Part shown: one piece after another, positions 7,201 through 42,710 of the stretch | Numbering within the stretch: position 1 is the stretch's first letter | How the letters are laid out: the number at the start of each line of letters is the position of its first letter | Assembly: GCA_001655205.1 (NCBI GenBank) | Contig: LPNZ01008880.1 | Coordinates: 1 to 64,000, forward strand | Length of the DNA: 64,000 bases | Source: Lenisia limosa | Lineage: Eukaryota > Protista > Breviatea | Reading direction: 5' to 3' | Position numbers and translations under genes: made by a program | The notes under the pieces: model-generated | The model's input: the letters and a program-made list of their open reading frames with translations, nothing else | What the model was told of the DNA's origin: nothing | The model's database searches: none

Positions 7201-10200
7201 TGTCAAATATAGAAGCTGATCACTTTTTTGAAGAATGGATGCAGCACCCCCCAGGTGAGACTGTTTTTTTGAAGTCACATTCTCAGAAAAGCCGGTCCTC
7301 CAAAAGCTGCTTTTAGCCTCCTTCCGGCTTCTTTCAGTTCTGCCATCACGGCACAATGACTTCTCTGGGCTCCTCTCGCAGGAGCCGGGAATGCAGGAAG
7401 GAATGTGCCAAGCCTCCCGTGAACGGTTTGATTTGTCTGCCATCTTACATCTAGACAAGTTCTTTTTGAACCTTTTCTTCAAACACCCCTTGACGAACCG
7501 GTTTTATCTGCTGCAACTGTAAGACCGCTACCCTTACTGGTTACGTTTTAGCTCGCACTTGCACGGTCATCTTTATTGGCCCCGAAAGAGTCCTTTGATA
7601 TCAACTATGAATTGTTCTCTAGTGTTGCCAAAGTACTTAATGCAGTTCTCCCCGAGGTCAACACTGTTCTTATCACCCTCAAATCCAAAAAAAGTTAGAT
7701 GCTGCCTATAGTGATAGTTTAGATTCAAGAGGTGAGCAGTCTTCACGGGCGTCTATCAGGCAGATGGACGGGGTTGTTTCAGCCTTGGAGTTCTTGATTT
7801 TCAAGTCAGTTTTATTTTGGGGTATCAAAACATTTACACTGTATTAAGATAGCATTTTTATTAGCTATATGATATTTTGATGTTATATGATATGCGGCCG
7901 TTCATAATTTTGGTTTTTTTTTCTTCTTTATTTTTGAATTATTGTATTTCATTTTTTTTTGTTATTTAGAATATCTCCTTAGATTAATCAACAAATAGGC
8001 TTCAAACGGGATTTAAGTTAAAAATTTGGGCTTCTTAGTTAGAGCTCTATGTATCCTAAATATTTTACTTTGACAAGAATTTGAAACCGACTTTTGAAAA
8101 GAAGTAGAAAACAAATAACCCCGAAAATGAAGGGTGACCGAAATAAACACAATATAGGTACAATAATATATACTACATATCGATATCATATACTATATGA
8201 TATGTATAATACTATCATATAAATATTAATATATACTACATGATATGATATCGTATACATTAGTTTGTTATAATATACTTTTTTTTACAGATATTGAATT
8301 CTCTTTATATTTTTGTTGTTTTGCAGAAAAAGTGATGTTTTGCATGACCAGGTAAATACTGCGACCAGAGTGCCTTTCTCACACTGCAGATCCTCAAGCT
8401 TCGATCCTTCTGACCTACAGTTCGCTGAGCTCTTTTCGGACGCGGCAATGTTGGGCTCTTCCCCATCCTCCTCCTTTATCATCACCGTTGTAGTCTTTCC
8501 GAATTTAGCCCTCTGCTCGAAACTCTCGGTCATTTCGTTGACATTCTCCTCAACCACAACAATATTGCAAACTACCGCGTGTACTTTCTCATCCTGAGAC
8601 GGCTCTTCCTGGTCACTTCTTCGCTCCTCGCCTTGACACCGCAAGAGGAGCTCAAAACGGCCGCAGCAAGGGAATACATTCGCATCCTGACTAAGTAAGC
8701 TGGTTTAGCTTCAAGGTTGCTTGTGAGATCGTGTCTGGTGTTGACCATGATGTAGGTATCTTGTCACTTCATGGACCCCGCTGGTCAAAGAAATTGCACA
8801 GTGGGACATGTTTATTGCAACTTTTTTGTCATCATCATGTCTCTATGCTCCGACTGAATTTCCCAATTACCCACAGCGAACATGTGTGGTCCTTTTGACA
8901 ATACAGGGCAATCTCAACACTCCGCGTGTGCATGCAATGTCTCTCGAGAGCAGATTGTGCTGCTATGAAAGACGTGGGGGAGGGGGGTCATTGAATGTTC
9001 TGTTCTGGTGACGGCAGGACCTGACTCTCAAGGAGCCAATAACACTGGTGACTCGCTTGGAGAAGTTCCAAACCGATCCGTTTGACTACGACGATGTTTG
9101 GCTTGTTGTCAGCGCGCTCACTGCTGCTGCCTCAAAAACCCAAGTTGGCTTATTGTCAATATCACAGCACAGGGCAAACCATTGTTTGAGATCATTTGGA
9201 TTATACACGAAGTCATGGTGAAGGCTGAAATTGTGTCATTCGACTCTTTGGTGAGTTCTCAGAATTCCTATACCATGGGATAGGATTTCTTTATCCATTA
9301 TTGACCGTTCCAGTTACGAAATGTCCTTTGTAATTTGGCACAAATGCAGTGGGGGGGGGGGTAGTCTCTTTTATTCTGGGTTATTTGACTTCACCATTTA
9401 GTTTGTTGGGGCTTGAGCCGAGAGGGCTCTTTGCTTTGATCCAAGAAGATCTGGCATTACAGCTTTTGAACAATATTTTGGGTGCCAAAACGGAGGAGGA
9501 GAAAGTTAAAGGAAAACAAGCTTACAAACATGTTTGTCTGCTTGGCGTTTGCTGATGTTTTAGTTTCAACGAATCTTATTACCTAATGACGAAGCGTCTA
9601 AGAAAGTCAAATACATTGAGGTTTGGGGTCAGGCCTAAGGGTATACTTGTGTACTCACGCGTCTAGCCCCACCAAGAGAATTTCCTCTCTGTTCTGTCAG
9701 ACAGTTTGTTCGAACATGCCGTCCTGAAAGACTGCGATAGTAGGACTCTCTATTTTTCTTTGTATTTCATGCAACACGTTGGTCCAGTTTATCGGTAGCT
9801 CATTGATACTTGCACACTTTCACAGTGTTTGTCGAATCAAAGTCACCCCCAACTTGCAATCGAAGTTGTTTTCTAATCCTTGGCAGTCCCAACATTGAGG
9901 AATACTCTGCGTTTCATCAACGAGGTGTCAGACAAGGAAGAGCTCTCGTTTTTTGATGTTTGTTCTAAGTTACCTTGTTCGCCCTGACCGCTTAGTTTAT
10001 GTCACGCCGCATGGGGCTTTTGGTAATCACGGTGTTGAAGACTTGGGACATGGCCGAGGCCGAGGACGTTGTCAAAGACTTCGTGACGCGGATCTGTCAT
10101 GAATGTGAGTCCGAGGATGTCCGTGACATCTCTAGTGAGAGTTGAGGAAGCCATATTGATGGAATCGAGCCAGAAGCTTGACCCCGTTCTACTGACACCA

Positions 10201-37079: not shown

Positions 37080-38111
37080 ATGACTCAAGCCTCAGGAGTA
37101 GGTTAAAGACCCTTTATATTTAAATAATTGGTCATATATTATATTTTACGTCCTTTAAGGATCCTGAGGCGGCCAGAATGAATCGGCCTCCAAACTTTGA
37201 CTTCCCTACTCCACCTACTCCCCCCACAAGGAAATGGCTTAACGCTAAGAAGTGGTACCAATGGCCCAATCCTATTGGTATGTGGGATTCTCATCCTTCC
37301 GTGTCAACTTTTGATTTGCTAAGGGGCTTCTTCTTCTCCTCTCCTTCGTATTAGAAAGTCTAAACATAATAGCAGAAACTCCTGTGTTTTTTTTCATCTT
37401 ATAGACAACCGCCTTGTTCGATTGATCTCCTTCTTTGTGTTTCTTTCGGCATTGACTATCTTAATCTTTGGTGTCATTGGAGACAATGATGAGGTGTGGT
37501 ACCTTGTCCCCTTTCTCTTCTTTGACTTTTTTGTCCGCACCATTTTTGGCCCCGTTCCTTTCAGGTAAGAGCTGTTTGTTGGATTTCTATTTCTTCGGGC
37601 ATTTACATTTACCTGATCAGTCCACTTGGTGTTCTTTCTACCATTATTTTGAAGATCTTCCGCATCAAGACCATCATGGTTCCTTCTCCTGCAAAAAGGT
37701 TTGTTCTTTGAGAAGGTAATACCTTAGGTTCTCTGCCTTCCTGGGTATTGTGCTCAACACTGTCCTCTTCAACCTAAGGTTTACCCTTGACTCTGAGCTC
37801 CAAAGAGTGAGCCTTGAGATATTTATTACCCCCCCCCCCCCCNNNNNNNNNNNNNNNNNNNNNNNNNNNNNNNNNNNNNNNNNNNNNNNNNNNNNNNNNN
37901 NNNNNNNNNNNNNNNNNNNNNNNNNNNNNNNNNNCCGTTTTGGGCTTCTGTGTTGGCTGCTGGATTTTCGGAGCTTTCTTCAGATGGCGGTATGCAGTCG
38001 GTTTCACTGGCGCTGACATTGCAGTGACGCACGGGAGCTGAAAGGCTGCAAAAAGAAGCTGATCCCTCCGCCCGGTCCTGCAAAGAAGGGTGGAAACCTG
38101 GTTCGTGATAG
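37080..38111 (+). CDS. DUF4395-like multi-pass membrane domain (apparent N-terminal part of the TrxR gene)
   Basis: Spliced in frame: MTQASGDPEAARM...WYQWPNPIG...NRLVRLISFFVFLSALTILIFGVIG...LFFDFFVRTIFGPVPFSPLGVLSTIILKIFRIKTIMVPSPAKRFSAFLGIVLNTVLF...[gap]...VLGFCVGCWIFGAFFRW. The R..., DF..R...SP, P.KRF...G and GFCVGC pattern fits DUF4395 (PF14340) as recalled, not searched. Confidence 0.7.
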
Positions 38112-38181
38112 GTTTGCGCTTGGGTTAAAAAGTAATCAAGACTGTATTAGACCTAGAGTTCATAATAATACCAACCCTTAG

Positions 38182-40649
<2,468 letters not shown>

Positions 40650-40650
40650 G

Positions 40651-40737
40651 CCGCCCATCAGCTGCCGGCACCTTTATCCACCCAACAAACAACTTCTCAC
40701 TGTTGGGCTTCGGGATGGTGTTGGCAACTCTGGGCGG
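40651..40737 (+). other. GC-rich long hairpin immediately after the TrxR stop codon
   Basis: CCGCCCA/TGGGCGG, TGCCGGCACC/GGTGTTGGCA, ATCC/GGAT and CCCAACA/TGTTGGG stacked helices. No GA/GA core. Confidence 0.6.
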
Positions 40738-40793
40738 CGAGCGGCCTGTTTGGATACTTAGCATTTAAATGGGCTTCCTGTGATTTGGGTACC

Positions 40794-40856
40794 TTTTGTC
40801 AATTTGTGACGTCTGGGGGGCCACTGTTTACAACTCCTTAGATTGAGATGACAAAA
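40794..40856 (+). promoter_or_regulatory. Candidate SECIS element (non-canonical GUGA core, CC apical motif) in the TrxR 3' UTR
   Basis: Helix I TTTTGTCA/TGACAAAA, core GTGAC/TGAG, helix II GTCTGGGGGG/CTCCTTAGAT, unpaired CC 11 nt after the UGA core, small apical mini-stem; about 150 nt downstream of the Sec UGA. Confidence 0.72.
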
Positions 40857-42250
40857 CCATGTTTCGTGTTTACCCTCTTCAAATGTATAATTATGGATTT
40901 TCAAAAGGGATTTGCGTGAATATGTTACTTTTTGAAAGTGTTAAAATGCCGCTATTTTCTATGAGAAACGATATAAGTAACATACCGTTGAAGAGAGGTG
41001 CCGAGGTTCGGAGGCTACGCAATCCTAAGAAGGTCAAACAAAATGTTTTTTATTATAACATTTCAATACTAGATGCATTAAGCTCCTTTTGCACAAAGCT
41101 ATTTTTGGGGTGTTTTGGAGCTAAATACAAGCGTACTATATTTGCTTTGTAGAAAGAGATAAAGAGAGGCAAAAGTCTCTTAGTTGAAAAGAAAAACAGC
41201 ATTTAGCTCAATCCACCTCCCGAGCAGGATCAGAGTATAAAAATAGTATTCAGCTATATTTTGCTGAGTATAAAATGAGCTGCTGAGTAGAAACGTTACG
41301 GGCTCCAGGTATCCTTAGATCGCAAAGAACTTGCATGAAAGTGACGTATATTGCTTGAAATCAACTACACAAATCTCTGAAATACGTGAGATTTGAGACA
41401 TCCAAAATGCAAGTAGCTTTGCTGACAAGAGGGAAAAGTTGTTTGACAATTTTAATATGTAAAGTTACTTTGAAACACCATCATATAGAAGCACCACGCT
41501 GAAAAACAGAGGCCCGATGAAAGCTTATTATTTCATCAGACAATGAGTCTGAAGAGCACTACCCTCCACATTTCTTTAACTTGAAGTACTGCTACCTAAT
41601 CAGCATAGGTAGCGTTCATAATCAGATTTTGTATCCGGCCCTATCTGTCACCTAGAACTTACCATAACTGAATTTTTATGAACCAATTAGGGAGTTGACA
41701 CGTTTACTTCTGTATTTATTGTTTCTTACAGCATCATGCAATAAATACCAACAACTATGTGTAAAGAGGGTATTAGAGACCGAATATTCTTTGTCAACAA
41801 TGACGTATCATATTCTCTTTTTTCAAAATCCAAAATATTTGTCAAAACAAGCAAGAACCAATTCCTACCATCAATCACATAATACGGATTTGAAAAAATT
41901 ATGGTTCCTCTTACCAAGAGTTGCGGGACGAAAAGTAAAGCCACAATGTGGAATTCCTGTTTTGTCATTAGTGGAGTGGAAAATAAGAAACTTCAAATTC
42001 TTTTGAATCTTTCAAATCCAAATGTTTAACTATGCAAAACCTTAAACCAGCATACGCAAAGCTTGCCTCAGCAGTAACATTTGATGTTAGATGGGAGAAA
42101 TTGCTTGTTTGGGTATTGTTTAGTCAACCCTATCTTGAGTCATAAATAAGTTGTACCAGTGTATTTACAACTCTCTTGATAACATTCAGCAGCAGATTAC
42201 TCCTTGAAGCACTCAGTTACTCAGATACAGCTCAGTTACATAGTTATATA

Positions 42251-42710
42251 ATGGCTCTCCGTCTGATTAGCTCGAGAGTGAGCCAACTAGTTCGACCATG
42301 TGTCAGAGTGAGTATTGCAGCTTCACATCTGGTGTATTTATGTCATTTAGGCGTTTTCTACAATGACTAATGATAAACCATTGATCAGAACAAACATTGG
42401 AATTTTTGGTTGGGTTTAATTTCGTTGCTTGCCTCTTCTTACCCCCTGCAGGTGCAATGAATGTTGGAAAATCAACTTTAATGAATGCCCTCACACAACA
42501 AGTATGAACTGCATCTTGGATGCTGTTGATCCCTTCATCATTCGAATACACACATTCCTGGCCTGATACACAAGGGGTGAATCTTTTTTTATGACCCTCT
42601 CTCTTCAAGCAGTGTATTATCTTATTTATTACAGGAAACTTCCATTGTTGATAGTACTCCTGGAACAACTGCAGATGCAAAAATTGCTTTCATGGGTAAC
42701 CGACTTTTTT

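Follow-up and report, generated by a model that had tools for sequence, protein, structure and literature searches.

A 3'UTR hairpin with a GUGA core and an apical CC is probably the SECIS element of a Lenisia limosa thioredoxin reductase

Can a hairpin that carries GUGA in its core, and CC where most eukaryotic SECIS elements carry AA, direct the reading of an upstream in-frame UGA as selenocysteine? We addressed this question in a 64-kb stretch of Lenisia limosa DNA (contig LPNZ01008880.1, positions 1 to 64,000 of the forward strand; hereafter the window), in which such a hairpin occupies positions 40794-40856. We conclude, with a probability of about 0.9, that it functions as a eukaryotic SECIS element and serves a thioredoxin reductase (TrxR) gene whose product contains selenocysteine. 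The case is well supported by the position of the hairpin, transcript evidence, its uniqueness and compensatory changes.

The identity of the gene was examined exon by exon. The C-terminus reads ...KTGC-UGA-GGT-TAA, with the UGA at 40641-40643 and the TAA at 40647-40649. The penultimate exon matched the terminal part of Pfam Pyr_redox_dim, and its best match in the PDB was residues 451-482 of the 499-residue mammalian TrxR1. A match ending at residue 482 of 499 leaves just enough room for a last exon carrying GCUG. The exon-wise Pfam matches to Pyr_redox_2 and Pyr_redox_dim were below threshold because the exons encode only about 33 amino acids. Together, the Pfam and PDB matches and the sequence reveal the two features of a high-Mr selenoprotein thioredoxin reductase, namely the pyridine nucleotide-disulfide oxidoreductase fold and a predicted C-terminal Gly-Cys-Sec-Gly extension. 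The gene product is a DUF4395-TrxR fusion, membrane-domain part included. A run of N (an assembly gap, approximately 37850-37950) falls in the membrane-domain portion of the gene. The introns between 38278 and 40599 are very short, mostly 29-53 nt with one of 110 nt. No tRNA gene was found in the window.

RNA evidence came from a poly(A) library made in the same study, whose contigs were placed on 38000-42600. One 1828-nt poly(A) RNA contig was found on this region, from which at least 14 GT..AG introns of 29-110 nt had been removed, and it connects 40561/40563 with 40597/40599 by splicing. Its final piece (40597-40877) is contiguous and spans the hairpin. Since this piece is unbroken, the hairpin lies inside the mature 3'UTR of the TrxR mRNA. 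Polyadenylation upstream of 40794, which would have removed the hairpin from the message, is thereby excluded for the transcript represented by the RNA contig, and for that transcript only. RNA depth was zero over 41080-41850. A weak RNA contig (40926-41079, depth 0.9) lies shortly beyond the end of the transcript and has a loose end at 40985.

The hairpin starts 151 nt downstream of the UGA, and its parts are listed in Table 1. Helix I consists of eight perfect pairs, and helix II of 10 bp including four G-U wobbles. The CC stands exactly 11 nt past the A of GUGA, and 22 nt separate it from the GA of the return strand. The pair adjoining the tandem G.A/A.G is U.G, instead of the usual U.U or U.A. 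A type II reading of the apical region is also possible, in which a CCAC bulge is combined with a ministem of 2 bp (UG/CA) and a loop of 4 nt, leaving one A unpaired. The initial annotation had described an 8-bp helix I, a GTGAC...TGAG core, a 10-bp helix II, CC at 11 nt and an upstream in-frame UGA, and all of these are present in the sequence. RNAfold likewise returned the described structure for the isolated hairpin at -18.7 kcal/mol, a stability not above that of shuffled sequences (z = -0.41). Folding energy alone thus says nothing for or against the hairpin, and the case for more than chance rests on motif, position and conservation instead.

Table 1. Coordinates of the last TrxR exon, the predicted SECIS element and neighboring 3'UTR structures in the window.
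Feature	Positions	Strand	Basis or remark
Last coding exon of TrxR	40599..40649	+	Sequence; spliced RNA contig; PDB and Pfam matches of the preceding exon
Long hairpin, a separate 3'UTR domain outside the SECIS	40650..40738	+	Whole-UTR fold; begins 7 nt past the UGA
Second, shorter 3'UTR hairpin, separating the long hairpin from the SECIS	40743..40775	+	Whole-UTR fold
SECIS helix I, 5' strand (TTTTGTCA / UUUUGUCA)	40794..40801	+	Sequence; fold; pairs with 40849-40856
5' internal loop AUUU and core G-UGA-C	40802..40810	+	GUGA at 40806-40809; G-UGA-C at 40806-40810
Helix II, 5' strand (10 nt)	40811..40820	+	Fold; comparison with L001
Apical region (13 nt), opening with CC at the usual AA site	40821..40833	+	CC at 40821-40822; fold; comparison with L001
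Helix II, 3' strand	40834..40843	+	Fold; comparison with L001
3' core U-GA-G-A	40844..40848	+	GA at 40845-40846; sequence; pattern scan
SECIS helix I, 3' strand (TGACAAAA / UGACAAAA)	40849..40856	+	Sequence; fold
Remainder of the 3'UTR within the poly(A) RNA contig	40857..40877	+	Contig ends at 40877

Two other registers were considered and rejected. Placing the core on the second GA (40847-40848) breaks helix II. A SECIS starting from the AUGA of the 3' strand (40848-40851) has neither AA or CC at 10-13 nt nor a helix, and it overruns the end of the transcript contig. The hairpin occurs once in the window, and a reading of it as a repeat was rejected for this reason.

How often such a hairpin arises by chance was estimated with a SECISearch-like pattern that requires [AG]UGA followed by one base and helix II, with AA or CC 10-13 nt away from the core, and a return-strand GA and helix I. 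The pattern gave a single match, the hairpin itself, on both strands of the 64-kb window (128 kb). In random sequence with the dinucleotide content of the window, 0.26 matches per 128 kb were obtained at the loosest setting, and 0.007 when the helices had to be as long as those observed. For a 230-nt UTR, this corresponds to approximately 5e-4 to 1e-5 expected chance matches. When the rules were made very loose, allowing any NUGA, any letters in the loop, two mismatches and a helix I of only 3 bp, the hairpin was still the sole candidate from the stop codon to the next gene (40641-42250). A better canonical SECIS elsewhere in the UTR, which would have spoken against the initial reading, is therefore not found by the very loose pattern in this interval.

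A relative was found through a stop-free 95-residue frame over one exon, which led to the protein P0001 (82% identity over the exon). P0001 is borne by a 29-kb ENA metagenome contig (L001). A tblastn comparison of the single exons showed L001 and the window gene to be collinear from the DUF4395/membrane-domain part via the linker to ...NPRKTGC-UGA-G-TAA. Intron positions are common to both genes, and the introns of L001 measure 100-700 nt. The L001 gene either comes from another organism as an orthologue of the window gene or is a close paralogue of it. Synonymous sites are strongly diverged between the two. Both genes retain the Gly codon that follows the UGA, and the TAA directly after it. 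The other protein matches were unrelated TrxRs, two of them without a reachable GCUG end. In JGI metagenomes, a two-row exon alignment returned 153 pattern sites, none of which was confirmed as a relative, and a SECIS-shaped DNA pattern returned five matches, which were rejected as chance matches because none had a complementary helix II.

The 3'UTRs of the window and L001 cannot be aligned except for an island at about L001 7475-7520. Here, UUGUGACG with the 5' core GUGAC, GGCCACUG with the loop start CCACUG, the loop-closing AA and the 3' UGAGAU are identical. Helix II is paired at 10/10 positions in both, and nine of the ten pairs differ (six by two-sided and three by one-sided changes), a covariation drawn from these two sequences only. 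The probability that ten random position pairs are all pairable is approximately 5e-5. Judging from the sequence comparison, such conservation is what would be expected if selection acted on the structure and its unpaired letters, among them CC, were important.

Other parts of the hairpin differ between the two sequences. The apical ministem is 3 bp (UGC/GCA) in L001 versus the possible 2 bp in the window, and the type II reading with a CCAC bulge fits both. Helix I of L001 is built differently, with 4 bp, a 6-nt bulge and 6 bp. The unconstrained fold of L001 favors pairing of GUGAC with a downstream GUCAC, the SECIS form being 4 kcal/mol costlier; the energy model gives no credit to G.A pairs. 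An unpaired AA is kept at the 3' end of the apical region (40832-40833 in the window; ...CAA before helix II), on the opposite side from the canonical AA. Two UUCG-tetraloop hairpins, CCUC-UUCG-GAGG (7467-7478) and GCC-UUCG-GGC (7531-7540), flank the L001 SECIS, and the one at 7467-7478 overlaps its helix I and internal loop.

When the whole UTR (40641-40877) was folded, the MFE and centroid structures alike showed the hairpin as a domain of its own. The whole UTR was more structured than shuffled sequences, with z = -3.4 for the window and z = -7.1 for L001. The two hairpins upstream of the SECIS have counterparts in L001 at 7262-7386 and 7387-7431, of which the long one is similar in position and size and different in sequence. 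The window and L001 show the same UTR order without sequence similarity, i.e., a hairpin of approximately 90-125 nt starting 7-10 nt past the UGA, a second hairpin and the SECIS. From the modeled folds, this shared layout may represent a Sec-redefinition-like structure or a structure of the stop-codon context.

Compared with the eukaryotic SECIS (RF00031; SECISaln), the hairpin is alike in its 3'UTR position, helix I, internal loop, UGA/GA tandem core and 10-bp helix II, as well as in the unpaired dinucleotide 11 nt from the core, the G:Y first pair of helix II and the optional type II ministem. The mRNA that carries it in its 3'UTR has an in-frame UGA where Sec is known to occur. The UGA (40807-40809) and the GA of the return strand are placed for tandem G.A/A.G pairs at the base of helix II, the geometry of this pairing being predicted. 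The SECISaln consensus contains R-UGAN/KGAW and a run of M (A or C), and its helix II opens with a G:Y pair; only UGA/GA is invariable, and its figure shows a nucleotide class if it is found in at least 70% of sequences (PMC2647825). The hairpin has the purine upstream of UGA (G at 40806). Its CC falls within the expected distances (10-13 nt past the core and 15-39 nt before the 3' GA), although it is not the majority form AA. Helix II shows covariation between the window and L001. The hairpin differs from the eukaryotic SECIS in having G for A before UGA, CC for AA and no RF00031 score. Of the SECISaln consensus, it fails to match only the W of the 3' core KGAW, reading UGAG with G rather than A or U at 40847, which places a U.G beside the G.A pairs; L001 shares this letter.

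The initial annotation had proposed that GUGA cores and CC loops are each known separately, and the literature bears this out. GUGA is common among green algae, sponges and protists. It is nearly universal in Ostreococcus SECIS elements and is also found in zebrafish and nematode genes (PMC2375036), and it is present in 12 of 21 sponge SECIS elements (PMC3473315). CC was described for mammalian SelM and SelO (PMC3316567) and is further found in human Trxr3, a thioredoxin reductase family member (PMC2761289). As both unusual letters are known from other organisms, the hairpin is fairly ordinary and the claim of novelty is weaker. We found no paper describing GUGA and CC together, text searches for this combination being poor, and a text search yielded no paper mentioning both Lenisia and selenoproteins.

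The hairpin combines features of two groups of known elements. It shares the unpaired CC at the AA site with the SelM, SelO and Trxr3 elements, and Trxr3 likewise serves a gene of the TrxR family. In contrast, the papers describe CC as the sole consensus deviation of the mammalian elements, whereas the CC of the hairpin lies within a conserved CCACUG. The mammalian CC-type elements arose within mammals, indicating that the CC of the hairpin has an independent origin. With the GUGA-core elements of Ostreococcus, Chlamydomonas, sponges, some nematode and zebrafish genes and the contigs L002-L005, the hairpin has in common the G before UGA and an origin in a protist or early-branching lineage. 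However, these elements keep the apical AA/AAA, and those of Ostreococcus have long ministems. Among the contigs of unrelated TrxRs, the ciliate-type L002-L005 carry GUGA with AAA/AAAA and L006 carries AUGA with AA. At their 3' ends, L002 and L003 terminate in GGGGTTTT repeats, like the telomeres of spirotrich ciliate nanochromosomes, and both contigs carry a GUGA_AAA SECIS unmatched by RF00031.

The claim that standard searches could miss such an element holds for one search model and not for the other. RF00031 gave no SECIS match in the window, in a 2-kb piece or in a 131-nt piece, neither at the gathering score (35 bits, which the hairpin does not reach) nor at E<=10, and it gave no match on L001. 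The Rfam matches that did appear, HULC and snoZ101, were at chance level and were rejected. In contrast, the published primary pattern of SECISearch includes NTGA__CC__GA with spacings of 10-13 and 15-39 nt (PMC2375036), and the hairpin fits this pattern at 11 and 22 nt. As a control, the canonical AUGA_AA element of L006 scored 29.2 bits with RF00031, below the 35-bit threshold, and the ciliate GUGA_AAA elements were unmatched. Since these control elements were also missed or under-scored, the failure of RF00031 reflects the animal bias of the model more than any oddity of the hairpin.

Regarding how the element would work, the 10-bp helix II is predicted to rest on a kink-turn-like core made by the tandem sheared pairs G40808.A40846 and A40809.G40845. 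Next to this core, U.G and possibly G.A would lie toward helix I, and C.U toward helix II. Given the G before UGA and the GAGA of the return strand, the core may be a stack of four non-Watson-Crick or wobble pairs (G.A, U.G, G.A and A.G), so that the G replacing the usual A before UGA may be paired rather than free. A SECIS-binding protein (SBP2-type, with an L7Ae fold) would bind the core. With eEFSec and Sec-tRNA(Sec), the ribosome would then read the penultimate UGA (40641) as selenocysteine, resulting in the GCUG redox end. The place of the unpaired AA would be taken by CC, or more fully by the CCAC bulge, CC standing there in mammalian SelM, SelO and Trxr3 as well.

Two other explanations of the hairpin have to be weighed against a functional SECIS. 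It might be conserved for a different role in the 3'UTR, for example in mRNA stability, localization or 3'-end formation, its likeness to a SECIS being coincidental and the real SECIS lying elsewhere or being absent. Such a role would agree with the lack of recognition by RF00031, with the presence of further conserved hairpins in the UTR and with the end of the hairpin lying only about 20 nt from the end of the RNA contig. Yet the letters shared with L001 are exactly those that define a SECIS (UGA, GA and the apical CC 11 nt away), whereas the helix tolerates changes in sequence. Moreover, a TrxR with a GC-UGA-G-stop end requires a SECIS, and even very loose rules yield no second candidate between the stop codon and the next gene. 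We consider this explanation very unlikely.

Alternatively, the UGA might be a plain stop that ends a truncated TrxR at ...TGC, leaving the hairpin as a decaying relic of a SECIS. Decay might account for the deviations from the consensus, namely G before UGA, CC, and U.G beside the G.A pairs, and in reporter assays the human CC-type elements of SelO and Trxr3 ranked among the weakest (PMC2761289). But decay would not preserve 10/10 helix pairs through nine substitution events, and every core letter is identical in L001 despite an otherwise unalignable UTR. The retention of the Gly codon after the UGA and of the immediate TAA in both genes also speaks against a relic, and each deviation is known in functional SECIS elements (PMC2375036, PMC3316567). 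A relic is, in our judgment, the least probable of the explanations considered here, slightly behind a structure with another job. The functional SECIS element remains our preferred reading.

Whether GUGA and CC together define a class is a separate matter. We found the GUGA/CC form in one gene family and two genomes. It is conceivable, but doubtful, that selection maintains the GUGA/GAGA core together with the CCACUG bulge as a SECIS subclass specific to the gene of the membrane-anchored DUF4395-TrxR. Such a subclass would tune the efficiency with which the penultimate UGA is recoded, or engage the SECIS-binding protein in another way than canonical elements do. The initial annotation had suggested that the two deviations may define the SECIS of this lineage. 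On this reading, GUGA/CC would be the general form, present in all selenoprotein mRNAs because the SECIS-binding protein co-evolved with it. Selection on GUGA/CC in two diverged genomes is consistent with such a form, and organism-wide core preferences are known from Ostreococcus and from sponges, with GUGA in 12/21 elements of the latter (PMC2375036, PMC3473315). Against it, CC in mammals is gene-specific rather than genome-wide (PMC3316567), and with one gene family covered, GUGA may be lineage-wide while CC is gene-specific. We regard a lineage-wide form as improbable, though less so than the two explanations that deny the hairpin a SECIS function.

The hairpin leaves the understanding of how SECIS elements work unchanged. 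It has a direct consequence for annotation. As the UGA at 40641 is the predicted Sec codon, automatic annotation would truncate the TrxR gene, and the hairpin provides a concrete case missed by the Rfam SECIS model that is useful for annotating protist selenoproteins. Taken together, a well-supported SECIS element is now available for a little-studied protist lineage, and it shows that outside mammals, too, a CC-type apical motif has arisen and been retained, together with a GUGA core.
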